IMG/VR virus record: IMGVR_UViG_3300042922_000542
Span: 182,148-246,147 of that record
DNA: 64,000 nucleotides
Direction: 5' to 3' (one strand)
Translations under genes and position numbers: made by a program
The notes under the pieces: generated by a model
Database searches by the model: none
Told to the model about the DNA's origin: nothing
What the model saw: only the letters and a program-made list of their open reading frames with translations
Part shown: positions 9,727 through 45,550 of the stretch, one piece after another
Position numbering within the stretch: position 1 is the stretch's first letter
Layout of the letters: each line of letters starts with the position of its first letter

Positions 9727-9738
9727 TAAGAAATTGTT
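9727..9738 (-). promoter_or_regulatory. late promoter AACA-N6-TA (sheath/tube)
   Basis: Minus strand reads AACAATTTCTTA; matches the AR9 late consensus. Confidence 0.7.
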
Positions 9739-9750
9739 ACTATAACAAGT

Positions 9751-10544: not shown

Positions 10545-12698
10545 TTAAAACATATTAATTTGATCAAAAAATGATGGTGGTATATCAACTGAGTCATCAA
10601 ATATATTATTGCTGTTAGGACGATTGGAATAGATAGGATCATAGATATTACTATTAACGGCTACTGCATATTTTTGCATTTGTTCCATTTCAATTGTGGT
10701 ACTTATTACAATCTCCTCAAACGTTACATTATCTGATGAGAAAAATTCTATATTACCACCAGATTTAATTTCTACATTCTGTTCATAATTCGGTTCTAAT
10801 GCCCCATAAATAGGATGGTCGGTTTTTCTAATACCAAAAAATTCTAAATTATCTCCGGTATAATAAACATAAATTGCATGATTATATGACATTACACAGT
10901 CATCATGTTCACCCTTAGCTGCTTGGATTTTACCAGTTGATGTTCTAATCAGTTTACACATATCATCGACTAAATATTCAGTATTAAGAATTTGCTTGCA
11001 TTCCTTAATGTGATTAAATAATAATTCAAACATAGCATCACGAACTTTTTTCGATGTATATGTACCATATTTCTTATATTGTTGCGATAATTTCTTTAAT
11101 TCATAATCACTTTCAGATTCATTTGCCATATCTTCCAATTGCTGTAATGAATCGGACCAGTATAAATTATCTTTAATTGAGCTTTCACAGATGGCGTGGA
11201 TTAAATATATACCCATGCTATTACGCTCAGGTATCAATACACCCTTTGGAATATAGTTAATTATAAGATCTATTAATACACGTAATAACTCAGTCCCACT
11301 TATATATGGTGATTTAAATTCTGCAGCAATTTGTAAGTTGTAAGGATTAACTATAGTTATAGATGTATTATCACCGCCACCACCGCCAGAAGGATCCACA
11401 CCTATTAAATACGGAATATTGGAATCCAATAATAATTTTGTATTTTGTTCATGCGGATATGTCAACATACGCCATTTCTTATTAAGTATGATGTCTGTAG
11501 TTGATTTCTGCATATGTGATATTAGGAATTCAAGATCTTCAGGTTCTATTGGTGAATCTGTAGATCCTCTTAGACGTTGCATTAATATTTCACGTCTAAT
11601 TGCCATTTTATCACCAGACAAATTATATTGCTCTTCAACCCACTTATGTGTTTTTCTAAGTTGCCAATACTGATATTCGATATAGAATATTCTTGTAACT
11701 TCTCTACTCTTATCGGTTGTGTCATCTTGATGATATTCATCGCGATATGCACTGATGTAATCTTCAATTTCTGCATCACTCATATCATATATTCGCTCAG
11801 TCCATGGAACCATTGATTTTATAATTGGTGCAGCAGTAGCACCTTCTCTTGTATCAAGATTACCAGGCGTTGTTGTGAAGATTCTACCATAAGGACGTCC
11901 TGCAATGGCAGCATTCTCAGATGCGGTTTTAAATGCAGGAGCAGAGTTGGATAATAATACATCAAAATATGGAGTATGTTCGATCTCGTCAAAATATACT
12001 ATGGACATAGAGTCACCACGGGCCATACCTTGGGCATGGGACATACTCGTGGGTTTTGGATGCATAACAATACGATTACCTCTGACTTTATTTTCAAGTA
12101 TTTCTGTTGCTTGTCGTGTCTTTTTAGTTTTACCGTCATTATCAATGAATCGTTTAAACTGTAACCATTCAGGAAGAACATCAATATCATTCTTTAAGTC
12201 TCTTAGGTTCTTCTTAGTGTTATCTGTGTCCTTACCAAAGAAATTGATATTAGCATTTTGAGATGCCAACTGAAAACACCATGATACGATAGTCGAAATA
12301 CTACCAGTTGTTTTATATGTCTGACGAGGTTCGCATAAACATGAGTCAAATCTTTTCGCAAAGCACCATATCAATGCGGCTAATCCACGATGTAAACAAA
12401 AGTCGACAGTACCCTTATCTGATTGAATCCTAGCAACGGTTCTTGCATAAAACCAAATATTTGATTGCAATTCACGCATTAGAATTTCTATTTCATGTCG
12501 TGTTATATTCTTTTTAAAAGGATCTATATCGCATACACCGGAATTAGGATATTTCACTTCCAACATAAAATAATAATTTTTTATACCGAGTGCTTTTAAT
12601 TCCATGGCGGTTTGCATAAAACTTTCATTTTTTGGTGAAAAGTCATAATATTTATATTCGCCTGTATGCGGATCCATAATTCTTTTGATATCAGCCAT
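10545..12698 (-). CDS. terminase large subunit
   Basis: Walker A PRQTYKT, Walker B VYFDE, coupling motif FTTTP, RNase H-like nuclease GVDPSGG...HDDCVMS. Confidence 0.92.
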   Translation of the reverse strand: MADIKRIMDPHTGEYKYYDFSPKNESFMQTAMELKALGIKNYYFMLEVKYPNSGVCDIDPFKKNITRHEIEILMRELQSNIWFYARTVARIQSDKGTVDFCLHRGLAALIWCFAKRFDSCLCEPRQTYKTTGSISTIVSWCFQLASQNANINFFGKDTDNTKKNLRDLKNDIDVLPEWLQFKRFIDNDGKTKKTRQATEILENKVRGNRIVMHPKPTSMSHAQGMARGDSMSIVYFDEIEHTPYFDVLLSNSAPAFKTASENAAIAGRPYGRIFTTTPGNLDTREGATAAPIIKSMVPWTERIYDMSDAEIEDYISAYRDEYHQDDTTDKSREVTRIFYIEYQYWQLRKTHKWVEEQYNLSGDKMAIRREILMQRLRGSTDSPIEPEDLEFLISHMQKSTTDIILNKKWRMLTYPHEQNTKLLLDSNIPYLIGVDPSGGGGGDNTSITIVNPYNLQIAAEFKSPYISGTELLRVLIDLIINYIPKGVLIPERNSMGIYLIHAICESSIKDNLYWSDSLQQLEDMANESESDYELKKLSQQYKKYGTYTSKKVRDAMFELLFNHIKECKQILNTEYLVDDMCKLIRTSTGKIQAAKGEHDDCVMSYNHAIYVYYTGDNLEFFGIRKTDHPIYGALEPNYEQNVEIKSGGNIEFFSSDNVTFEEIVISTTIEMEQMQKYAVAVNSNIYDPIYSNRPNSNNIFDDSVDIPPSFFDQINMF

Positions 12699-17623: not shown

Positions 17624-19411
17624 TTAAACAACTTCACCATATACATCAGCACTGTTAAGCATAACAAGTCTTGCCTGAATACCTTGAACAGAGATATCTT
17701 TGTATCTGCTTGTTGCAGTAACAATTGTATATGCTCCGCCAGGTCTATTAGTTGACTCGTACGCTGTTTGACTTTGTGAAGTCATTAAGTGTGAAGTATA
17801 TTTTAAGTGTTTGAAAGAAATATGTTCGTCATCAGTTGGGTAAGCATAGATTCTAAGAACAAGTTCTTTCTTATTTGTTGGAGCTACAGCTGCATCTGTA
17901 TATGCTTTATATACGTTTGATGCAACAACTCTAACCGGTGCACTCATATCTGTTGCAAAACCATATGAGTTGTTTACAGTGATACCACCAACTGATGCTC
18001 CCTGTTGGTAGTTCCATGTTGTCCATTTAGAAATAAGTTGGCAAGCCATTGGGTTACCAGCGATAACAAAGCTTAAGTTATCCAATTTAGCAGCTTCACA
18101 GAGTTTGTATATCAAACCTTTGATGGCAAATTGAACTGCATTTGCTTTGTATATAAATGGATCTCCAGCAAATCCAACCGGTGCTTTAAGATCAACCACA
18201 TGTTCCTGAACAAGTGATTCCAATTTATAGATGTCAGATTTAGTTCCAGCATATTTCTTATATTCATCATCAAGGAATCTAAGAACATTTTGTCCCTCTA
18301 TCATTTCTTGTGTCTTAACTATTTCATCAACCATTCTGTTGTAATAATTAATATCAAGTAATGCAGCAGCATCTTCGATTTCTTCTATTGAGAAAGGCAT
18401 ATTCCATCTTGCACCGTCTTCAATTGTGAATTTTATCAATTCACGTTTTTCTCTAACAGATACAGTTCTTGTATTTAATTCATTTGATAAATATCCTTCG
18501 AATACAACCCCAGTAACTTGAGCGTTGCAAGCAGATACATTAACAGTACCTTTTTTGAAATCAATTTTACCAGATACGCTATCTTTGATTATGGTTCCAT
18601 CATCTGCAACGAAATCAAGATCGCCATTTACAAATGTACCGCCAGTTGAGAATTCAACAGTAATGCCGTTTCCTTTAAGTTTATAAATTTTAGTAGCAAC
18701 TTCAACAGCAACAATTTTGATATTGTATGATAATCTATCTTGACCAGGTATTCCATCAGTAAGATTGTCAATGATATCATATTGATAAGCTGGTACTGCA
18801 ACTACAGTATCTTTTATTACATGACCTTTAGCAGCATCCCAAATCTTTTCCCATGTTCCATCAAATATACATTTTGGATATTCATACTCGTCACCAGTTG
18901 TATTGTCAACAAGATATGTAGTCTTAATGTGTTTTGCAAGGTTAGGAGTCTTAGTAGTTTCCACTTCAATAACATCTTTTATTATTGATTGGAAGAACTG
19001 TTTAGCAAGAGTTGGAAACTCTAATGTAGCGATCGGTAAGAATGAAAGTGTTGAAGCTGATTCATTGTAACTTCTAACTTTAGCATCCCAAAGTCTTTCA
19101 ACGTTTTCAACAAAGCTTTCAATGTGAGGGTCATTTGCAGATGCATTTCTGAATCCCTCGTATATTGGCTGTAATAGGTCTACCTTGTATGATTCCATAA
19201 ATGCTTTGTCGCCTACCATTGCACCTAAGTCACGTTTAATATCAATACCTACGCGGCTTTTGTAAGATTCATATAACTCATTAAAATTTTCCTGGAATGA
19301 TTTCCCAGATCTTGACACCTCAAATGAACTGCGTGAATTTGCAAGGTTTGGTGTTATTGTACCAGCGGATTCTCCGAACCAAGATCCGTTATTATTTCTT
19401 TGATAACTCAT
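17624..19411 (-). CDS. major capsid protein precursor
   Basis: 595 aa; strongly biased codon usage; own late promoter and terminator; ES-rich N-terminal propeptide; jumbo-phage MCP-like SIEEIEDAAAL and IAGNPMACQLI. Confidence 0.75.
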   Translation of the reverse strand: MSYQRNNNGSWFGESAGTITPNLANSRSSFEVSRSGKSFQENFNELYESYKSRVGIDIKRDLGAMVGDKAFMESYKVDLLQPIYEGFRNASANDPHIESFVENVERLWDAKVRSYNESASTLSFLPIATLEFPTLAKQFFQSIIKDVIEVETTKTPNLAKHIKTTYLVDNTTGDEYEYPKCIFDGTWEKIWDAAKGHVIKDTVVAVPAYQYDIIDNLTDGIPGQDRLSYNIKIVAVEVATKIYKLKGNGITVEFSTGGTFVNGDLDFVADDGTIIKDSVSGKIDFKKGTVNVSACNAQVTGVVFEGYLSNELNTRTVSVREKRELIKFTIEDGARWNMPFSIEEIEDAAALLDINYYNRMVDEIVKTQEMIEGQNVLRFLDDEYKKYAGTKSDIYKLESLVQEHVVDLKAPVGFAGDPFIYKANAVQFAIKGLIYKLCEAAKLDNLSFVIAGNPMACQLISKWTTWNYQQGASVGGITVNNSYGFATDMSAPVRVVASNVYKAYTDAAVAPTNKKELVLRIYAYPTDDEHISFKHLKYTSHLMTSQSQTAYESTNRPGGAYTIVTATSRYKDISVQGIQARLVMLNSADVYGEVV

Positions 19412-19484: not shown

Positions 19485-19496
19485 TAACTAATTGTT
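19485..19496 (-). promoter_or_regulatory. late promoter AACA-N6-TA (major capsid)
   Basis: AACAATTAGTTA. Confidence 0.7.
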
Positions 19497-19511
19497 ACAT
19501 ATTCATTTTAC

Positions 19512-20104: not shown

Positions 20105-22855
20105 TTAGATGATTCTAGCAATTTTCTTACCGCCGTCGACACGAAGTAATTTTTTAGTCACTTCACGTTTAATTCTAATTAATTGATATTTTGCAGTATT
20201 ATCACCATTGTTCGCAGCATCTTTAATCTTCTCATCTATAATTTCGAGTTCGGCTTTTAATTCACCGATCATCTCATTACGAATACGAAATTGATTTTTA
20301 TCATTAGTGATTTTGTTGGTGATAGCTAAAAACATAAATACTGGATTGAATAGTAATTTAGCTTTTAATAAAGAGCCGGTCATGATAGCATTCCTAATGG
20401 CTCTATATAAATTCTGCCTTGAACGAGGATCTGCCATTTTTTCTTTCATTTGATTCTCATTCAAATCTTTCCATTGATTAAGCATACCATTTATCCATCC
20501 AACGGTACGAGTTGTTGGTTTCATAAATGTTTTACCAACATTAATTGCACTCTGCACAGTCTTTTTTATTTCCTGTTGCTTTCCACTTAAATTCCTGTCA
20601 ATATCCATCAATGTATCTCTTATCGGATGATCCGATTCTGGTTTAGCAGGTTCTTCAGTTGATTCGATAATCACATCAAATATACTATCGGAATTTGATT
20701 CATTATCGTTTAATAATGGTTCTATATCATCAGAATTGATGATCGATGATTCATTGAATACTTGATTATTTAAAAATGCTTTAGCACTCATAATCATTTG
20801 TACTTCTATGACAGCATATTTTTGTAAAGCTTCATATGCAGTATCATATATACCATCAACATCATCATCTTCATTCATATCCTCAGGACCTTTAGATACC
20901 AACTTAGCATTTATTATATATCGCCAAATTCCACCATTATCATCTCCGGGCAAATCATCACCAAGGTCAACTATTGCAAATGAAATATCATTGGTTGATA
21001 ATTTTTTAAGTGCATTATTAAGTTTAACGATGTTTGATTTTTGAATAACACCTGTTAACATATCGCCTACAAATATTAATGTATCCTCATTATGCATCTC
21101 TTTTTTATCGCCGGCCCAACCGAAATAAGCTTTAATTGGTTCTTCGATTTCAACGCCACCATCAGTGGATTTATAGAAATATTTTAAAATACTATCTGAA
21201 TCAATATTGTCAAAGTGTGTTTGGAAATATTTGCTGGCTAATTCAATATATGGTTTAAGATTCTTTATTGTAGTACCAATTATTTTTGATACCATTTCAC
21301 ATACATATTTGGCCTCTTTTTTAGTCATTACAGCAGCATATGTTATCACACCAACTATTCCAATACCAAATATTACGATGGGTGCAAACAATGTTATCAT
21401 AATTAATGTGGATAATATTGTCATGATAGCACCTTCACTCATAGGTTTAGGTTGAACATCAATACCATCCATTATATCAATAGAAAACATGTCAGTTGAT
21501 TCAGTCTTTGTTTCATCAGATTTGGTATCAACATTATATGACAATGTCGAATGTGTTGAATGATCATCATTACGATGTTTATTAAATGAATTATTATAAG
21601 TATAATAATAATTATTAACTTGACCATCATGTTTTAACGACGGTTTAGAATCATCGTCAACCTTGTCATTATCTTTAACAATAATTTTAGCTGGCGTAAT
21701 ATCATCAGGCACTGGTTGTTTGATATAATCTGTTGGTTTTAAATCAGCATTAATCTCTGTCTCTGGTGCGATAGTAGATTGTTGATCATTATCATCTTCG
21801 CCATATGATAAAATTTGATGCTGTTTCAGATAATCTGGTAATTTACCATATTTTTTATCCCTAGTAGATTCAATTAATCCAGGAATATCTTGTTTAGATA
21901 ATACTTTTTTACTAACAGTTGTTGGGGGTAGCATATCAACGATATCAGCACATGATTCATTTTCAGGAAGTAAACCATCAAATTCTTCATATATCGATAT
22001 TATGTCATCTTCGATTGCTTTGATATCATCAAAATTCTCCAACGTAGTCATATAATATTCTTTAAATGAAATATAATCATGCATATGATTAATTTCTTCT
22101 TCAGTATACTCAATGAATTTCTCTTCATCCATCAGAACTGATTCTTTATGGAGAATAGCATTTTTTAATTTAATTGATTTGACAATACCCTCTAATGACT
22201 CTTCTGTGAATTTCTTTTTTAAGGTATTTAATTTGTCGGAAGGTGATTTAATATCCTTTGATGCTTCCAGCAGCCATTGATATAAGGTTGGATTACCATC
22301 AGAACTATTAACAGCTTCTGATAAAAATTGAAATACTATATCAGCCTTATTATTTCTTTCAGCTGTAATGATAACATCGGGAATCGCAGCTTCACCAAAT
22401 TGAGATAATACCTTAGGTATATTTGAATTGAAATATTCATTATAGTATAATTTAGTATATTCATCATGAGATGCATCCAGTTCATCTTTATATGCCTCAA
22501 ACATAATAAATGAATTTTTATATTCATTCTTAAATGACTCCAACATTTCTTTAGATTCATTATAAATACTAGAATCAATACCACGGTATTTACACTGTTT
22601 GATAGCATTGTCAAATGATTCCATAATACTATCATATTTAATTAACGGGATACCATATTTTTCAATAAATTCTCTAAATGTTTTTACACCATGATTAGAT
22701 GTAATTATATATTCTAGATTTGATGCATAAAGATATGGATCATTTTGTAGAGAATTATTTACGGCTTCAATGTAATTATTAATATCAGATTGCAAGCCTG
22801 AAGATTTAGCTGATTGATACAATAATTTTATATCTTTCAAATTAATCAACTCCAT
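20105..22855 (-). CDS. large putative internal head protein
   Basis: More than 10 xxE-S/A motifs, an internal hydrophobic segment and a C-terminal coiled coil; CACA-N6-TA at 22887-22898. Confidence 0.6.
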   Translation of the reverse strand: MELINLKDIKLLYQSAKSSGLQSDINNYIEAVNNSLQNDPYLYASNLEYIITSNHGVKTFREFIEKYGIPLIKYDSIMESFDNAIKQCKYRGIDSSIYNESKEMLESFKNEYKNSFIMFEAYKDELDASHDEYTKLYYNEYFNSNIPKVLSQFGEAAIPDVIITAERNNKADIVFQFLSEAVNSSDGNPTLYQWLLEASKDIKSPSDKLNTLKKKFTEESLEGIVKSIKLKNAILHKESVLMDEEKFIEYTEEEINHMHDYISFKEYYMTTLENFDDIKAIEDDIISIYEEFDGLLPENESCADIVDMLPPTTVSKKVLSKQDIPGLIESTRDKKYGKLPDYLKQHQILSYGEDDNDQQSTIAPETEINADLKPTDYIKQPVPDDITPAKIIVKDNDKVDDDSKPSLKHDGQVNNYYYTYNNSFNKHRNDDHSTHSTLSYNVDTKSDETKTESTDMFSIDIMDGIDVQPKPMSEGAIMTILSTLIMITLFAPIVIFGIGIVGVITYAAVMTKKEAKYVCEMVSKIIGTTIKNLKPYIELASKYFQTHFDNIDSDSILKYFYKSTDGGVEIEEPIKAYFGWAGDKKEMHNEDTLIFVGDMLTGVIQKSNIVKLNNALKKLSTNDISFAIVDLGDDLPGDDNGGIWRYIINAKLVSKGPEDMNEDDDVDGIYDTAYEALQKYAVIEVQMIMSAKAFLNNQVFNESSIINSDDIEPLLNDNESNSDSIFDVIIESTEEPAKPESDHPIRDTLMDIDRNLSGKQQEIKKTVQSAINVGKTFMKPTTRTVGWINGMLNQWKDLNENQMKEKMADPRSRQNLYRAIRNAIMTGSLLKAKLLFNPVFMFLAITNKITNDKNQFRIRNEMIGELKAELEIIDEKIKDAANNGDNTAKYQLIRIKREVTKKLLRVDGGKKIARII

Positions 22856-28032: not shown

Positions 28033-28146
28033 ATGTTATATAATATTATAATGGTTATACTAAAAATTTTAGAAGTCATGGCACTATGGTGCATATATAC
28101 AGTAATGGTGGATAATTTCAATTATAACGGTTGGAGAAAAAATTAA
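28033..28146 (+). CDS. 37-aa hydrophobic micropeptide (not in ORF track)
   Basis: GGAGG SD; MLYNIIMVILKILEVMALWCIYTVMVDNFNYNGWRKN. Confidence 0.6.
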   Translation: MLYNIIMVILKILEVMALWCIYTVMVDNFNYNGWRKN

Positions 28147-28163
28147 ATATCGGAGGGAATAAT

Positions 28164-28277
28164 ATGTTTAATAATATATTTACGATACTTTTAATAGCCG
28201 TAATCGGCTATGAGATTAAAATGATTGTCGATGGAATAAAAGAAGTATATCATGAAGTTATAAATTGGACCGAATAA
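28164..28277 (+). CDS. 37-aa hydrophobic micropeptide (not in ORF track)
   Basis: GGAGG SD; MFNNIFTILLIAVIGYEIKMIVDGIKEVYHEVINWTE. Confidence 0.65.
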   Translation: MFNNIFTILLIAVIGYEIKMIVDGIKEVYHEVINWTE

Positions 28278-28298
28278 AATAATAGGGAGGATAATAAT

Positions 28299-28430
28299 AT
28301 GATGAATTTAGTATTAACATTTTTAGTAGTAGCTGTGATTGGTATATTCGTAGGGACTTTAATTACTGAAGTAATTGATAATCACAAACGAGGAATATAT
28401 AATAAAATAAATAATAGTGAAATACACTAA
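28299..28430 (+). CDS. 43-aa single-TM micropeptide (not in ORF track)
   Basis: GGAGG SD; MMNLVLTFLVVAVIGIFVGTLITEVIDNHKRG... Confidence 0.65.
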   Translation: MMNLVLTFLVVAVIGIFVGTLITEVIDNHKRGIYNKINNSEIH

Positions 28431-28770
28431 ATTAGTTTAGATGATCGGGAATTCTACATACGTTTATAAGTAGAAACCGTTATGGTTATTAAATAACAAT
28501 GTGCGGATAAATTAAATGAAAGGAGGATTCGGACAAAAAATATTTAATAAACCATAAATAAACCCGGTTGCTAATATAGATCGCATTTACAATACATTGT
28601 CATTAATTAATATTTACTTTGGGGACGAGTAAACATTAGGTGAACGGATGAGTTATTTAATAAACCTAATCGACAACTGTATTGAATGTAAATCTCATCT
28701 AGGGGTAGTATGAATTAAAAGAGGGATTCTATTTGGGGAATAAAAGGGGTTTATATAAACCCCTTTTATT
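28431..28770 (+). ncRNA. candidate structured non-coding RNA of unknown family
   Basis: ORF-free 340 nt with two nested multi-stem domains, ending in a terminator. Confidence 0.5.
28739..28770 (+). terminator. intrinsic terminator
   Basis: AATAAAAGGGGTTTA/TAAACCCCTTTTATT followed by a T tract. Confidence 0.85.
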
Positions 28771-28832
28771 TTTTATATATTTTGAATACAATGACTCTTT
28801 TATAAAACACAATTTACGGAAGGTGGAATAAT

Positions 28833-31800
28833 ATGTATATTAATTTAAAAATAAATAATTCAGCTGAAGCATCAATAAAAGACTCTCAATGGAAAAATCC
28901 AGGAGCCAGTTTATATGATAAATTATTAGATTCATTTTACTATCCAAGTGATGATGTTGATGATCCTAAAAATCTATACCCATCACATTATTTAAAGGAA
29001 GCATATTTAATAGCCCCAATTAATAAAATTAAAAATAGTCCATATGGTAGAACCCCTTACTCTAGGAGTGGATGTAAATACCCCCATCACAATATTAGGA
29101 ATAATGAATTAGTTCTTGATATAAATGGTGTGAAGGCTGCATATGTAAGGGCCAGACAAATGGGAATATTCAAAGGTGACGTAAAAGAACATCTAATGGG
29201 ACACATTGAGGAATTAAATCTTATGGAAGTATTACATATCAAAAATGATGATATTATAGAGGAAAATTTTAATTTTATTGAATCTCATTTGTATATATCT
29301 GAATCAGTAAACAACCCTAATACTGGGGATACTAAAAAATTTTATGAAATTTTTAATATGCTAAATGGTGTTCATTATGGAATGTATAATACAAAGCTTA
29401 AAAAAGTTTTGTATTCTGAGATAATTGATGATGAAATAAATTTATTAGATTATTTAGATCAGCATGGTGATTCAGAATTTATTATCATGAAACCAGATGA
29501 TGTAATTAAATATAAGGCTGGAACTTGTTGGGATACATCATTATTCATATATGCTAAATTAATTGAAAACGGATTTAATCCACAAGTGGTATTCTACGTT
29601 ATTAATGATAATAATCACATAATTACACATTCAACTATAGTTGTTGAAGATTCGAATCGAGTAAAGTATAATATTGAATATAGTCATAGTGTTAGACGCG
29701 GTATTCATCAAATTGATAAAATAGAAGATGTATACGGCAATGAAGATGATATCATCTTTGTCAATAATAATGTTGACGTTACTAAATTATTGAAGAAGAA
29801 TGAAATTAAACCAGATGATTTTATCAAGGCTACAGAATGGAATCCAAATAAATCTATAGTTGAGTCTACCACATATTATGATTTCTTTAATGAAACATCT
29901 CACGGATTACTTAAATCATCATTTAGGTATGGTGTTAACATAGAAAATGGGCATAGAATAAAAATTGTATTTGATCTTGATGTTGCTAATATTAAATTCA
30001 CCGGACATGACTTTGGTGGAGATGCAACAAATAAGACATACGACGCTAATAAAAATATTTCTAAAAAAGGAAATAATGATTTTGTATCGATTGGAACTGT
30101 GAAAGCTATTATAGATGAAGATACTAATGAACGTTTACAATCTGTAAAAATAGTAGGTTCATTAAATAAATATATGATGAACATTGGACCTTTTATTGAA
30201 CCAGAGGGTGGACCGGTATGGAATATTGCTAAAGAAGAAAGAGCTAAAGAATCATTTGAATTAAACTCACTGCGTCTAAGAGAAATGATGGTAAAATCTA
30301 AAAATTGGAATCCACCATCAAATATCGTTAATAGCTATAAGGTCGGTCAGAAAGAAGATGATCCGACATATAAGGCTACAAGACCTGCGGCAAATATTTT
30401 CGATCTGGCATCCAATATAAATTCACATGTTAGATCTCCTCGTTTTAATGCCAAAGGGGTTCCAGATGATACCAAGACAATTAAAAGAAAAATCCATAGT
30501 ACCTATAATGAGTTTAAAATTATTTATAATGCAGCGTTTAATATTGCTAAAAAAAATAATGATGTTGAAGCTGGTGAGCAATTGAAGAAGTTATTGGATA
30601 CATTTGGAAGTAATGTTAAAAATGGTGTGAAATACATTTCATCAAATGAAGTTAATTCAGCATTAGATATACAAAATGAATTAATTAATATTAAAAGTGA
30701 AGCTAGAAAAATTCTCGATTCATTAAAATCTAAATATAAAACTGAAAGTGCATCTGAAATTATGATGAAAGATAATTTTGCTTTTATTGAATCATTTGTA
30801 TATTCTGCGCAATCAATACAAGAAGATACATCTATAAATGAGTCATATGTATTTTCACAAGATAATCTAGAAATTGATTTAGATCAGTGGTCGGCAACAC
30901 ACGGTAAAAATTTATTATTTATTACTGGTCAGGCAGGCTCAGGTAAATCAACTCTAGCTAGAAGTATGGCTAAACAGCATCATGCCGTATGGTTCGGACT
31001 TGACTTTTTTGAACAAACTGATCCTACATTAAAAAATATCAGCGAGTGGAATAAAAAATATGATGACGGAGATATTGAATTTCAATGTGTACCATTTATG
31101 TTAGAATACTATAAGGTCAGACCTGAATTGTTAACAAACTGGAATACCATAGTGAAAGATGAAGTTAAATTTCATCACGAATTTCTTCTATTTTTGAGAT
31201 GGTTAATTAATCGATTATATAAAATTAATCAACTATTTATTATTGAGGGCGTGCAATTAGCATTTTATGTTGACTATGCAGAATATGAAAAATATCCATT
31301 AATAATAATGGGGTCATCCATGTTAAAATCAACAGTTAGAAGAATAAAAAGAGCTGAAGAAAAGCATGGTATTAAAAGTGCTATTCGCAATTTGATGTTA
31401 TCATTTAAGAGAAATAAAATGTTTATTGATGATGAAAAAGTGTTAGATGATTTAAGAGATTCGGCTAATGCATCTAAAACTATGACTGCCGATGATAAAT
31501 CTATGCAAAAGATTATAATATCAAAAGGGACATATTTGCAGAGGCTTACTACAAGCAAAAATGAAAGTAATGATGAACGCCACATATATGTATCTCAGAC
31601 GAAAATGGATAATGATAAATATTTAGTTGAATGGGGTAACCGAGGATACAGAGTAACTTTAGAAGTTACAAATGATATCATTATGCCAATATATAAAGAA
31701 CGTTTTTCTGCATTTATGAGAGCTATAGAGGGAGCAGACGTTGATAGGGTAGCAAACGATATTTCAAATTTAAAGTATAGAAATAATGGTGAAAAATTTT

Positions 31801-32648
31801 TAAACGAATGGAAGAATAGAAATACCAAAGAGGTTAGTAAAGAGAGTTATATATCTTTTATATCATCTTTAACAAGTTCTGATTATAACAGACAAATATT
31901 TTTTAAAGAACTTAAATTGCGCGGATATAATGCCACAATAGATGATAATGATGCTGCCGAATGGACGGATAAACCAATAATTATTTTTGAAAGAAATAAA
32001 AATATCAAACAAACTGAGTGCATCAAAATTGATAGCGCGATGATAGATGACGCTAAAGAAAGGTTGTCAAAAGAAAAAAATATGGGTATTATGGAACATG
32101 CTATATATGAAGAAGTAAATATCGAAAGGGATGAAAAGATAGAAGTCGAAAAGGAAGTAACCGATGAACCTAAAGAAGAATCCCTACCCAAACAAACTGA
32201 TGCTAAAGAAGCTAATAAAAACGGCGTTAAACGTAAGGAATTATATATGAAATTTATTGAATATGCAAAATCAATAAATTCAAATAATCTATTTGGTAGC
32301 GTATTCGATAAAGATGCATTCAATATATATTCATTTGTACCACATGAAATGCGATATTTCTATAGGTTATCGAATCCATTATTATGTGTATTAAAAGATT
32401 CATTAGCATTCTTTGCATTATCGGAATTGAAAAAGATAAATAAGGATAATAAAAATATCAATACATTATTAATATTCGCCGCAGATAAGTCTAATAAAGT
32501 TATTGTATTTAATAATAATGATAAAGCAATTTATGAAGGCGCACAAAAGAATAATGAAATAATAGAATTAAATAAAATTGCGAACTCATTTGATAAGTAC
32601 ATAGAGAATTTAATTGGTATAACCATTCTCGAAGAATCCTTTTTATAA
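28833..32648 (+). CDS. polyvalent multidomain protein (transglutaminase/Cys-protease-like, P-loop kinase-like and ART-like domains), putative head cargo
   Basis: GTCWD...THS...IEYS; ITGQAGSGKST...IIEG; LQR...YVS...GYNATIDDND; domains separated by xxES linkers. Confidence 0.65.
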   Translation: MYINLKINNSAEASIKDSQWKNPGASLYDKLLDSFYYPSDDVDDPKNLYPSHYLKEAYLIAPINKIKNSPYGRTPYSRSGCKYPHHNIRNNELVLDINGVKAAYVRARQMGIFKGDVKEHLMGHIEELNLMEVLHIKNDDIIEENFNFIESHLYISESVNNPNTGDTKKFYEIFNMLNGVHYGMYNTKLKKVLYSEIIDDEINLLDYLDQHGDSEFIIMKPDDVIKYKAGTCWDTSLFIYAKLIENGFNPQVVFYVINDNNHIITHSTIVVEDSNRVKYNIEYSHSVRRGIHQIDKIEDVYGNEDDIIFVNNNVDVTKLLKKNEIKPDDFIKATEWNPNKSIVESTTYYDFFNETSHGLLKSSFRYGVNIENGHRIKIVFDLDVANIKFTGHDFGGDATNKTYDANKNISKKGNNDFVSIGTVKAIIDEDTNERLQSVKIVGSLNKYMMNIGPFIEPEGGPVWNIAKEERAKESFELNSLRLREMMVKSKNWNPPSNIVNSYKVGQKEDDPTYKATRPAANIFDLASNINSHVRSPRFNAKGVPDDTKTIKRKIHSTYNEFKIIYNAAFNIAKKNNDVEAGEQLKKLLDTFGSNVKNGVKYISSNEVNSALDIQNELINIKSEARKILDSLKSKYKTESASEIMMKDNFAFIESFVYSAQSIQEDTSINESYVFSQDNLEIDLDQWSATHGKNLLFITGQAGSGKSTLARSMAKQHHAVWFGLDFFEQTDPTLKNISEWNKKYDDGDIEFQCVPFMLEYYKVRPELLTNWNTIVKDEVKFHHEFLLFLRWLINRLYKINQLFIIEGVQLAFYVDYAEYEKYPLIIMGSSMLKSTVRRIKRAEEKHGIKSAIRNLMLSFKRNKMFIDDEKVLDDLRDSANASKTMTADDKSMQKIIISKGTYLQRLTTSKNESNDERHIYVSQTKMDNDKYLVEWGNRGYRVTLEVTNDIIMPIYKERFSAFMRAIEGADVDRVANDISNLKYRNNGEKFLNEWKNRNTKEVSKESYISFISSLTSSDYNRQIFFKELKLRGYNATIDDNDAAEWTDKPIIIFERNKNIKQTECIKIDSAMIDDAKERLSKEKNMGIMEHAIYEEVNIERDEKIEVEKEVTDEPKEESLPKQTDAKEANKNGVKRKELYMKFIEYAKSINSNNLFGSVFDKDAFNIYSFVPHEMRYFYRLSNPLLCVLKDSLAFFALSELKKINKDNKNINTLLIFAADKSNKVIVFNNNDKAIYEGAQKNNEIIELNKIANSFDKYIENLIGITILEESFL

Positions 32649-32690: not shown

Positions 32691-32885
32691 GTGGAACCGT
32701 ATTCACTATTTACAACATGTTTACAATGGGGCGGAATTATAACGTTATTTGCATTATCGTTTAATACATTAATAAATGTTACTAAAGTAAGACGAATAAC
32801 GTTAAGGATTAATAGAATTAGGAGTATTGGTGTGAGTCCTGAAGTTATAAAGCAGACTGTTAATGGTTATGTAATTTTAAGGTAG
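32691..32885 (+). CDS. small membrane protein
   Basis: GGAGG SD, GTG start, hydrophobic N-terminal half. Confidence 0.6.
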   Translation: MEPYSLFTTCLQWGGIITLFALSFNTLINVTKVRRITLRINRIRSIGVSPEVIKQTVNGYVILR

Positions 32886-32905
32886 GAGGGTTAAACCCTC
32901 CTACC
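32881..32905 (+). terminator. intrinsic terminator
   Basis: GGTAGGAGGGT/ACCCTCCTACC followed by a T tract. Confidence 0.85.
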
Positions 32906-38151: not shown

Positions 38152-39126
38152 ATGAAAAAAATTTATCAAATGAATACAGAAAATAAAAGCTTCTTAGATT
38201 TTTCATTATTGTTAAAAGAAGAAGGTATAAAAAATCATTTATTCATGTTGGAATTAAAAAATGAAAATCTATTATACATTGATCCATGGGATGGTTATAA
38301 AACAGAACAACAACAGCAACAAATCATTGATGAAGCATGCAATAATTTCTGGTATTTCGCTAGGGAAGTTATTAAATGGCGAGATTTAGATGGTTCATTG
38401 TATCATACTAAATTAGATAGAGGCAATTGCGCAATGTATTTTAATAGCTTAAACAATATTAGTACATGGAGATCGAACATTAGACAAACTTATTCTAGTA
38501 TAAGCGTAATTACATTTCTAATATGGCGTTGGTTATCAGGGTATTATACTGATATGGATGCTATAACAAGAGATATATCAGCATCAAAGCAGTTGAAGAC
38601 GGTGGTATCAAATATCATTAATAGTCTACCAGAATATTTTAATATTAAAAAACATGAATCATATAAATATTTTGGCATCATTGATAATGATAAAAATAAG
38701 ATACACTTTAATAGTTCTCGAGTTATAATTAAAAATGGATCAAATATTGATTCGGATATTGCATTTTTTGACGGTGGTGAATTTATACCAAATTTAAAAT
38801 CACTAATTGAAAATAGGAATCTTAATACACGTGAAATTAATAATACCAAATTCACTATAGTTAACTCTGTAATTGGCGATGACAAAGCACCATCTAGTCT
38901 ATTTGCGGAGGGATATATAGATTCAATGTTAAAATGGAAGGACACATTTTATGATACGGATATATCTATAAATAATGTGATAATCAATAATTATCACAAT
39001 AGGTCTGTATACATATGCCACCCTTACAATCTCCTTGGATTTAGTGAAGAATGGTTTAAAAATTATAGTAACATGATTGACGATGAAAATATAATTAGGC
39101 GTGAATTGTTGGCACAAAGAAGATAA
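38152..39126 (+). CDS. truncated, degenerate terminase-large-subunit paralogue (ATPase domain only)
   Basis: NKSF..GIKNHLFMLE..IDPW..NFWYFARE..RQTY..RRELLAQR is colinear with the TerL at 10545-12698. Confidence 0.8.
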   Translation: MKKIYQMNTENKSFLDFSLLLKEEGIKNHLFMLELKNENLLYIDPWDGYKTEQQQQQIIDEACNNFWYFAREVIKWRDLDGSLYHTKLDRGNCAMYFNSLNNISTWRSNIRQTYSSISVITFLIWRWLSGYYTDMDAITRDISASKQLKTVVSNIINSLPEYFNIKKHESYKYFGIIDNDKNKIHFNSSRVIIKNGSNIDSDIAFFDGGEFIPNLKSLIENRNLNTREINNTKFTIVNSVIGDDKAPSSLFAEGYIDSMLKWKDTFYDTDISINNVIINNYHNRSVYICHPYNLLGFSEEWFKNYSNMIDDENIIRRELLAQRR

Positions 39127-44487: not shown

Positions 44488-45462
44488 TTATTTCTTTAGT
44501 ATTCCTGCAAGTCCTACTATAACTTGCATTCTGTAGTTATTTACGGCAGTGTATAAAGCTATACAGTGCGCCATAGTTGAACTTGTATCTTCAAAGAATT
44601 TCTGACCTAACTCTGACATTTTACCTTTGTAATCTTTGTCAAGATTTAAGTTTTCAATTTTGAATCTATAAGCTTCAAGCTGTTTAATTAATTCATCAAT
44701 AGTTCCTGAATCAGCACTAACTACGATACCGCGTGTACGGCTTTCATTTATGTATCTTTCAAGAACCTTTTGAAGTGTTTCTACACCTTTTTCATTGTCT
44801 TCGGTTAAATTTTTAGCAACTTTATCGAAGAATTTATTGATATGTCTTTCAGCGATAGCCATGTTATAAGGTCCATCTGATGCTATAGTAGTTTGAATCT
44901 TTCTGTTAACAAGAGCTGCAGCTAATTTGTCTTTAATTGCATTATCATTCCACTTTAATATGTTGCTTGGCAACTTATGGAATCCTTCAACTTGTTTTTC
45001 AGAAATTGGAGCTCCAGATGTTTCAATAGCAGCTTCAACAACTTTCTTTATAGCTTCTTTGTCTGCATCAGTAACTTCATTTAAAGCAGTTAATTTTCTA
45101 ACAACATCTTCTGCCTTAGCTGATACATCTTTCATCTTCTTGCCTAAGTTCTTTAAGAATGAAATGAATCCATTCCATATCTTTAGTATCCATGCTTTCG
45201 CATCACCCATGAACTTTTTAGCTTTATCAGTATATTTAGATTCTAATAATGCAATAGCATCATTTCCTTGTGATTCAAATAAGAATCCTTCAGTTAAATA
45301 TGATGCTGATTCTGTAACTAATGTTGCATTTTCTGCAAGGAACTTCTGACTATCAATGTATCCCTCCATCAATGTTAATTCACTAGCTTCCTTCATGAAC
45401 TTATAATTTTCCTGACTGTGCTTAAATAACTCACACTCAACCATGAAATCTTTAATTGTCAT
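44488..45462 (-). CDS. abundant putative internal head protein
   Basis: VTESASYLTEGFLFESQ..LLES followed by an amphipathic helix; leader nearly identical to the major capsid leader. Confidence 0.65.
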   Translation of the reverse strand: MTIKDFMVECELFKHSQENYKFMKEASELTLMEGYIDSQKFLAENATLVTESASYLTEGFLFESQGNDAIALLESKYTDKAKKFMGDAKAWILKIWNGFISFLKNLGKKMKDVSAKAEDVVRKLTALNEVTDADKEAIKKVVEAAIETSGAPISEKQVEGFHKLPSNILKWNDNAIKDKLAAALVNRKIQTTIASDGPYNMAIAERHINKFFDKVAKNLTEDNEKGVETLQKVLERYINESRTRGIVVSADSGTIDELIKQLEAYRFKIENLNLDKDYKGKMSELGQKFFEDTSSTMAHCIALYTAVNNYRMQVIVGLAGILKK

Positions 45463-45524: not shown

Positions 45525-45536
45525 TAACTTAATGTT
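45525..45536 (-). promoter_or_regulatory. late promoter AACA-N6-TA
   Basis: AACATTAAGTTA. Confidence 0.7.
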
Positions 45537-45550
45537 ACTAGTGAAATTTA

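Follow-up and report, generated by a model that had tools for sequence, protein, structure and literature searches.

The stretch of DNA analyzed here, which we call the window, comprises 64,000 nucleotides of IMG/VR virus record IMGVR_UViG_3300042922_000542 (positions 182,148 to 246,147) and belongs to a 246-kb jumbo phage. On its plus strand, at 28833..32648, it encodes a 1271-amino-acid protein, P0001, which is very probably a variable-cassette polyvalent protein: a conserved N-terminal domain (N domain) and a conserved C-terminal domain enclose a middle that changes from one relative to the next. P0001 has identifiable domains with conserved catalytic-type residues, its middle varies at a syntenic locus, and its linker is repeated. 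The best explanation we can offer for the whole, which we consider an even bet, is that P0001 is a bracketed multi-effector protein that is targeted to the capsid, cut by a protease and ejected.

The gene is a single open reading frame (ORF) with an ATG start and is the sole long ORF at its place. A predicted ribosome-binding site, GGAAGGTGG, read from the sequence and strong, lies 6 nucleotides 5′ of the ATG (28818..28826, +). The unusual length of the frame is the one feature that would fit an assembly or annotation artefact fusing separate genes; against this, the frame is uninterrupted, the ribosome-binding site is strong and the same N and C ends recur in proteins from dozens of independent contigs, and we give such an artefact almost no weight. 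Each motif named in the preliminary description of this DNA was found at the coordinates which that description gives.

An exhaustive search with residues 1-1200 returned 990 representatives at E values up to 1e-3, 133 of them at E up to 1e-30, and we mapped six pieces of P0001 onto the best 160 (161 proteins mapped). All family counts are of representatives at the 50% identity level, among which relatedness remains. In BLASTP and phmmer maps, a conserved N part (residues 1-140) and a conserved C part (residues 1105-1271) flank the variable middle. Altogether 89 representatives, 324-1923 amino acids long, start with the N domain and end with the C-terminal domain, identified below as SUKH, and the stretch between these two ends measures from 39 to 1647 residues. 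The shortest members consist of the N domain, a helix, a disordered linker and the SUKH domain (for example P0027, 367 amino acids); the cassettes of longer relatives, according to precomputed Pfam assignments, include GNAT, HD, NUDIX, HAD, SNF2, transglutaminase, kinases and more. The order found in P0001 (N domain, transglutaminase-like Cys peptidase, a module that we call U, P-loop NTPase, ADP-ribosyltransferase (ART)-like domain, C-terminal domain) occurs in no other representative. Megablast of the gene against isolate phages gave no match, and tblastn against the isolate phages of the August 2025 collection gave matches for the ART-like domain only, so that no isolate there carries the bracketed family; we found no published description of the family in the literature.

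At one locus the variation can be followed between positional orthologues. In the window and in the related contigs L004, L008 and L009, the neighbor of the polyvalent gene, in head-to-head orientation, is the same DEAD-type helicase gene, and the respective polyvalent products are 1271, 1485, 367 and 945 amino acids long; the capsid proteins of the window and L004 are 62% identical. A comparison of orthologues for a variable middle had been set beforehand as a check on the preliminary description of this DNA, and the middle does vary at the syntenic locus. Because the four positional orthologues span 367-1485 amino acids, cassette-wise accretion, which that description had suggested from a duplicated linker, is well supported on sequence comparison.

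The linker in question is an element of about 30 amino acids with the consensus SEEKIEENFDDIESYIEESTGIDLFED and, in a position-specific profile, with the hydrophobic spacing of an amphipathic helix. P0001 holds one copy at residues 139-164 (IIEENFNFIESHLYISES; 29247..29324, +), which contains the stretch EENFNFIES..ISES (residues 141-158, nucleotides 29253-29306), and another at residues 641-671 (MMKDNFAFIESFVYSAQSIQEDTSINES; 30753..30845, +), which contains KDNFAFIES..INES (residues 644-671, nucleotides 30762-30845). The duplication is borne out by a hidden Markov model (HMM) of 105 copies from other proteins, which finds both copies (E 8.6e-8 and 4.9e-4) and has no other significant match among the ORFs of the window; aligned by BLASTP, the two are identical at 8 of 19 positions and similar at 16. 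In a model of P0027, our proxy for both end domains (58% identical to P0001 in the N domain and 69% in SUKH), a long helix at 144-172 follows the N domain at the position of the linker. The element stands after the N domain in nearly all family members, is internal or tandem in some and precedes the N domain in others, a distribution that fits recombination at linker copies. At a fixed position of the element, [IL]-x-E is present in 55% of copies.

The preliminary description had left both end domains without a name. The C-terminal one (residues ~1112-1271; 32166..32645, +) is, on its modelled fold, a SUKH-1 (SMI1/KNR4) domain: the proxy model reaches VIA Z scores of 9.2-10.3 to seven SUKH structures (3d5p, FBXO3, 2pag, 2icg, YobK, Knr4 and Syd), a Foldseek E value of 7e-4 in the PDB and more than 20 Knr4/Smi1 clusters in AFDB, and the Atlas agrees. 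The Pfam family SMI1_KNR4 (PF09346) scores below its cut-off (19.1 bits against a gathering score of 25.4, E 0.002). Ahead of the domain runs an acidic, lysine-rich stretch of low complexity (residues 1095-1140; 32115..32252, +), whose equivalent in the proxy is disordered, with a predicted local distance difference test score (pLDDT) below 50. This stretch is the real linker at the C-terminal end; IMEHAIYEE (residues 1086-1094), which had been taken for one, is the last helix of the ART-like domain in the model.

The N domain (residues 1-142; 28833..29258, +) contains the motifs SGCKYPHH (KYPHH being residues 82-86) and HxxxHxxEL, both invariant in the family alignment. It has no match in Pfam, PHROG or PDB-sequence searches, and a Pfam scan of the N alignment gave nothing recurrent; the proxy model resembles YonD_N in shape (104 amino acids at 2.2 Å, Atlas). 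A tblastn search with the domain returned a single fecal phage record. The informative relative is a 554-amino-acid protein of a 75-kb fecal phage, whose residues 204-307 align with the N domain at 37% identity (E 1e-21). Its gene lies directly 3′ of the portal gene and is followed by a small ORF and by a 363-amino-acid ORF (phrog_4088), which stands at the place that the major capsid gene takes in related phages. The 554-amino-acid protein consists, in order, of a YonD-like region, a linker-like YIKENF motif, the N-like domain and an acidic coiled-coil tail; its first 190 residues are phrog_3313, and the match to YonD itself is weak (E 0.007). phrog_3313 occupies the same portal-adjacent slot in Bacillus, Enterocloster, Lactococcus and SPbeta-like phages, where the slot gene of SPbeta is yonD, and depositors have named the slot protein 'prohead protease', 'prohead core protein peptidase' or 'structural protein'. 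By homology, then, the N domain is a relative of a head-assembly domain, and capsid targeting is therefore a reasonable role for it.

The same two ends allow a different reading, in which they are a fused toxin-immunity pair, the N domain being a His-Me (HNH-like) nuclease, SUKH its inhibitor and the cassettes passengers. SUKH domains are immunity proteins of nuclease toxins. YobK and, at lower scores, the immunity proteins Tdi1 (Z 6.5) and RhsPI (Z 5.5) are among the structural matches of the SUKH model, the C...HH...HxxxH pattern of the N domain is invariant in the family, and the best solved-structure match of the N domain is a retron HNH nuclease. That match is weak, however (Z 3.8, within noise), neither Pfam nor PDB profiles give an HNH family, and the closest homologue outside the family has lost the Cys of the pattern; an Enterocloster phage counterpart lacks the HH pair, in an alignment which is itself non-significant (E 11). 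The proxy model also lacks a confident packing of the N domain against SUKH (predicted template modelling score (pTM) 0.59, disordered linker). We regard a toxin-immunity pair as very improbable and keep to the relationship with head assembly.

Between the two ends lie four cassettes, whose conservation we judged from per-domain alignments; a single alignment of residues 1-660 with domain fragments was dropped, as low-identity fragments were misplaced in it. PDB sequence searches with the whole protein and with profiles of the N plus C, U and ART alignments gave nothing useful. The first cassette is a predicted transglutaminase-like or papain-like Cys peptidase (residues 166-346; 29328..29870, +), as the preliminary description had it. 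Pfam DUF553 (PF04473) matches above its cut-off of 20.5 bits, with 21.1 bits for the whole protein and 23.5 bits for the excised piece. The triad is C232 (29526-29528), in GTCWD (residues 230-234, nucleotides 29520-29534), H266 (29628-29630), in a THS motif, and E282 (29676-29678), in IEY; all three are invariant in 15 homologues, as are G230, D234 and G290. The domain, near whose end stands IVES (341-345), is found in 20 of the 161 mapped proteins.

Module U (residues 347-645; 29871..30767, +) is specific to phages and starts with F-x-E-x-SHG(K/L)LK. It is the commonest cassette of the family, present in 51 of the 161 mapped proteins and often in two to four copies each, and the Glu of the starting F-x-E-x-S is kept in at least 90% of copies. 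For this module, earlier described as a domain of no recognizable kind, searches of Pfam, PDB sequences and the Atlas gave no relative (best Atlas feature score 0.53).

The third cassette is a kinase-like P-loop NTPase (residues 673-880; 30849..31472, +). Its Walker A motif, GQAGSGKST (residues 699-707, nucleotides 30927-30953), includes K705, and its Walker B, LFIIEG (31233-31250), includes E805. Over 23 copies these read GxxGSGK[ST]T and, in a Walker B-like form, hhhhEG, followed by a GTS...R segment that holds R840; G699, G704, K705, D724, G806 and R840 are invariant and E805 is kept in at least 90%, which upholds the original P-loop call. The pattern resembles that of small P-loop kinases. 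Pfam offers generic families only: AAA_22 on the excised piece alone (27.7 bits, cut-off 27) and, below cut-off, Zeta_toxin, AAA_33, CPT and other P-loop families.

The fourth cassette (residues 886-1094; 31488..32114, +) belongs to phrog_7502 and had been likened to ADP-ribosyltransferases on the strength of motifs such as GYNATIDD (nucleotide 31923) and PIIIF (residues 1048-1052). The likeness extends to the predicted structure. A model from an alignment of 107 relatives has a pLDDT of 90.3 and a pTM of 0.84, and its 14 best matches among solved structures all have the ART fold (Z 4.8-6.8), with the next unrelated match at Z 3.3. Tse6, an Rhs toxin tip and the catalytic domain of diphtheria toxin (139 residues aligned) score Z 6.8 each, followed by KptA, NatT and Arr. 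Hits in AFDB at a probability of about 1.0 include clusters named ART-PolyVal-like (E 7.7e-4), RES and DUF3990, and in the Atlas the template modelling (TM) scores are 0.63/0.58 to RES and 0.47/0.48 to ART-PolyVal. As all Z values are below 8, we speak of moderate support for residues 886-1094 adopting the split beta-sheet fold of the ART superfamily.

The candidate active site consists of R904 (strand 1), Y919/S921 (strand 2) and D1037/D1040 (end of strand 5), where the strands are matched to those of ARTs by order; R904, Y919 and D1037 are near-invariant or invariant in the 107 sequences. Strands 4 and 5 are separated by a helical insert of about 75 residues. Published polyvalent ART domains have H-Y-D at these places (PMC5512222). 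Residues 880-1115 have no match to any Pfam family at E up to 10, ART-PolyVal (PF18760) included, and strand 1 carries Arg, not His; going by the model and the alignment, we file the domain as an R-Y-D variant in the ART superfamily and not in the Pfam ART-PolyVal family. It could be an NADase (an enzyme that splits nicotinamide adenine dinucleotide, NAD+) or a phosphorylase rather than a transferase. In Arthrobacter phages, stand-alone homologues are encoded between terminase and portal and bear an N-terminal 25-amino-acid DUF7211 peptide, HYGVKGMKWGVRR (xLxHYGVKGMKWGVRR), which may be a targeting or processing signal. The combination of DUF7211 with an ART-like domain is seen in P0110, P0144, P0163 and gene 9 of Arthrobacter phage Tokki (L001:5779-6627), and the leader stands ahead of the ART-like domain in hundreds of small actinophage proteins whose genes lie between terminase and portal, some of them also GNAT-fused; we found no account of DUF7211 in the literature. 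Another member of the ART superfamily in a Firmicutes phage is SPbeta yopC (L010, 31586-32914), annotated as a RES domain protein.

How might such a protein be used? Packaging of P0001 plus processing by the prohead protease, for which sequence and analogy with other phages speak, falls just short of an even chance in our estimate. The constant N domain with its amphipathic helix and the constant SUKH-1 end would frame a slot into which lineages inserted from zero to many cassettes, the cargo in the source phage being the Cys peptidase, module U, the P-loop NTPase and the ART-superfamily enzyme. The N domain and helix would direct the protein to the prohead as a propeptide, comparable to the long ones at the N-termini of giant-phage ejection proteins. 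The prohead protease would then cut after Glu at the h-x-E-S sites of cassette borders and free the cassettes inside the capsid, and the pieces, ejected with the DNA, would hit host proteins, nucleotides or NAD+ as infection begins, in take-over or counter-defence. In T4-like and giant phages the prohead protease cleaves after Glu; that of SPN3US does so at A-X-E with Ser preferred at P1′ and takes off N-terminal propeptides of 111-254 residues, which may have a targeting function (PMC10052503). More tentatively, we can extend this proposal to a general cargo-loading device of the jumbo-phage clade, in which the N-terminal targeting domain and the amphipathic helix, reused for targeting and cleavage, would allow any cassette to be spliced into one capsid precursor, cut apart and ejected, with SUKH as the ancestral cargo.

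The ES dipeptides bear on the cutting step. P0001 has 11 of them against 7.1 expected, and 5 of the 11 fall inside the 10% of residues at homology-defined domain borders (binomial P 0.003, for borders drawn post hoc). The preliminary description had read ES sites as linkers; E911-S and E1004-S lie within the modelled ART fold, and thus not every ES is one. Over the 161 family proteins the observed-to-expected ratio of ES is 1.62, compared with 0.93 for SE, and there are 671 instances of h-x-E-S but 236 of h-x-S-E. Starts of the form h-x-E-S/G are found in 20 of 23 P-loop repeats, borders between tandem repeats included. Elsewhere in the window the top ES excesses are those of the major capsid protein (7 against 2.7 expected), a 916-amino-acid gene product (12 against 5.1) and a gene with a capsid-type promoter, while the DnaB-like helicase and the polymerase have no ES at all.

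If the protein is indeed cut, the scissors could also be its own: the transglutaminase-like Cys peptidase might process P0001 independently of any head protease. The Cys-His-Glu triad is intact and invariant, and autoproteolytic peptidase domains have been proposed in other polyvalent proteins (PMC5512222). Such autoprocessing cannot be general, since only 20 of the 161 mapped proteins have the domain, whereas the linker and the ES excess are family-wide, and the peptidase could equally be an effector. We consider self-cleavage improbable.

Promoter-like motifs address the timing that packaging implies. The motif GTAACA-N6-TA stands 74-87 nucleotides upstream of the tail sheath gene (motif at 9727-9740), the major capsid gene (19485-19498) and gene 44488-45462 (45525-45538), on the minus strand in all three cases. 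Because of its likeness to AACA-N6-TW, the late promoter reported for phage AR9, we treat it as a candidate late promoter. The 12-mer AACAATTAGTTA precedes the capsid gene in the window and, at -76, in L004, and the same 12-mer lies 53 nucleotides upstream of the polyvalent orthologue in L002/L003. The location of the stand-alone ART-like genes of Arthrobacter phages, given above, is a further clue in favor of packaging.

Several observations weigh against packaging and processing. Neither the window's own polyvalent gene nor its orthologues in L004, L008 and L009 have the late-promoter-like motif upstream. The surroundings of the gene are replication genes, with helicases upstream and a polymerase-like gene downstream, and not a head module, and no prohead protease was found among the ORFs of the 64-kb window by PHROGs, with Pfam on unassigned ORFs. 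As to the ES statistics, the borders were drawn after the sites had been seen, the observed-to-expected ratio in the window's other proteins is already 1.25, and the Glu conserved where modules start could have a structural role. For the N and SUKH folds the protein modelled was P0027 and not P0001 itself. Finally, a likeness by eye between the N-terminus of the capsid protein (QENFNELYESYKSRVGIDI) and the linker did not hold up (linker HMM score -0.3), and that candidate copy was not used.

The main rival account is that P0001 is not packaged but is an early or middle product of the replication region, an intact cytoplasmic multi-enzyme in which the ENF helix and the ES stretches are mere spacers. 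Its neighbors fit that account, being helicases and a polymerase-like gene, with nucleotide-metabolism genes in relatives, and so does the isolation of the gene as a separate unit between two terminators that has no capsid-type late motif. Yet a portal-adjacent head-assembly protein contains a homologue of the N domain, one orthologue bears the capsid-type promoter 12-mer noted above, and the family-wide excess of h-x-E-S over h-x-S-E is hard to square with plain spacers. On balance we think an unpackaged multi-enzyme unlikely, and we prefer the reading in which P0001 is loaded into the capsid and cut there.

The two terminator-like hairpins that delimit the unit lie upstream of the gene (28734..28775, +; a 19-pair stem followed by a T run) and 3′ of it and of one 64-amino-acid ORF (32881..32905, +; an 11-pair stem with 7 G-C pairs, then a T run). 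The upstream hairpin closes a cluster of tiny ORFs. Between the helicase gene and the polyvalent gene, at 28033-28430 (+), three of these lie in tandem (37, 48 and 43 amino acids), each with a good ribosome-binding site and at least the last two with a hydrophobic helix. A scan for sigma-70 promoters in the window did no better than shuffles (55 found, 53 expected) and was not used. In L008 (7055-9601) and L009 (7205-9754) the adjacent helicase gene has a LAGLIDADG domain and encodes 848-849 amino acids, compared with 495 in the window, a difference that points to the insertion of an intein or a homing endonuclease. L009 also encodes a PemK-toxin-like protein (568-1173) and a protein with a weak match to a phiKZ internal head protein (PF12699; 16318-17334), both less than 10 kb from the polyvalent gene.

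The phage itself has a G+C content of 30% (27-35% across the window). Among the products of the window are a major capsid protein, tail sheath, terminase and a beta-like subunit of a multisubunit-type RNA polymerase, as well as a DnaB-like helicase, a DEAD-type helicase and a polymerase-like protein. By capsid protein the closest isolates are Staphylococcus phages S6, PALS_2 and MarsHill, Bacillus phage AR9 and Listeria phage LPJP1; because identity to them is only 22-24%, we place the source phage, on this comparison, as an uncultivated, distant relative of AR9/PBS1-like jumbo phages. Two ORFs match large-terminase families, one of 717 amino acids at 10545-12698 (-) and one of 324 amino acids at 38152-39126 (+). 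The shorter aligns with the first 374 residues of the longer at 26% identity (E 5e-21) and is, judging from this alignment, a diverged paralogue of the N-terminal (ATPase) region of terminase.

Beside the capsid module, the 916-amino-acid protein (20105-22855, -) has the strongest ES excess of the window and six h-x-E-S sites; it has no family match, has syntenic counterparts in L004 and L008, and is a candidate processed head or ejection protein. In the capsid protein (17624-19411, -), QENFNELYESYKSRVGIDI and DPHIESFVEN, at residues 40-62 and 94-103, are kept in the L004 orthologue, in which residues 1-40 are not kept, and are possible maturation cleavage sites.

Polyvalent proteins are regarded as the earliest weapons that a phage carries into the cell, and few have been tied to a mechanism of delivery or processing. 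The P0001 family looks like a modular kit of host-manipulating tools in a form not described before, and at a single syntenic locus, where both ends stay constant and the middle holds anything from no cassette to eight or more, it provides a clean natural experiment: the piece that brings the protein into the capsid, release by the head protease and the effect of each cassette on the host can all be tested there. Four uncharacterized modules of phages are defined by it (the N domain, the ENF helix, module U and, with its DUF7211 leader, the ART-like family phrog_7502), and the repertoire of phages gains SUKH as a domain that stays constant beside enzymes that vary. If the cargo-loading reading is true, it would amount to a polyprotein strategy for the injected arsenal of a DNA phage, and its loading logic could be used to put chosen proteins into phage capsids.

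P0001 fits the description of the polyvalent proteins of Iyer et al. (2017; PMC5512222): at least two unrelated enzymatic or effector domains, encoded by a phage and mosaic among relatives, with ART-fold, peptidase and kinase-type domains and, in relatives, GNAT. Like those proteins, P0001 is predicted to travel with the DNA. It differs from them in its two constant brackets (YonD_N-like at the N end, SUKH-1 at the C end) with all variation between, in its repeated helix of about 30 amino acids (ENFxFIE) and in its ART domain, which comes from another family and has R-Y-D where theirs have H-Y-D; the word 'SUKH' is absent from the main text of that paper (PMC5512222).

With giant-phage ejection proteins and T4 internal proteins P0001 shares an N-terminal region proposed for targeting and, as candidates for cleavage, sites after Glu with Ser at P1′, and with T4 Alt an ART-type enzyme as cargo; its host phage is likewise a jumbo phage with multisubunit RNA polymerase genes. 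In the systems of T4 gp21, phiKZ gp175 and SPN3US gp245 one propeptide is taken off one protein, whereas here several enzymes would come from one precursor, and the motif is h-x-E-S rather than the A-X-E of SPN3US. The ART-like domain matches RES, ART-PolyVal and Arr-type enzymes in fold (VIA Z 5-6.8: Tse6, diphtheria toxin C domain, KptA, NatT, Arr) and has conserved polar residues on strands 1, 2 and 5, the strands being matched by order; it is set apart from them by its separate sequence family (phrog_7502), its helical insert and the DUF7211 leader of its stand-alone members. MuF-type polymorphic toxins of temperate phages join a head-morphogenesis domain to variable toxin domains. P0001 is like them in combining a head-associated constant domain with variable effectors, and unlike them in having no MuF domain by Pfam, many cassettes in place of a single C-terminal toxin, and a constant SUKH end.

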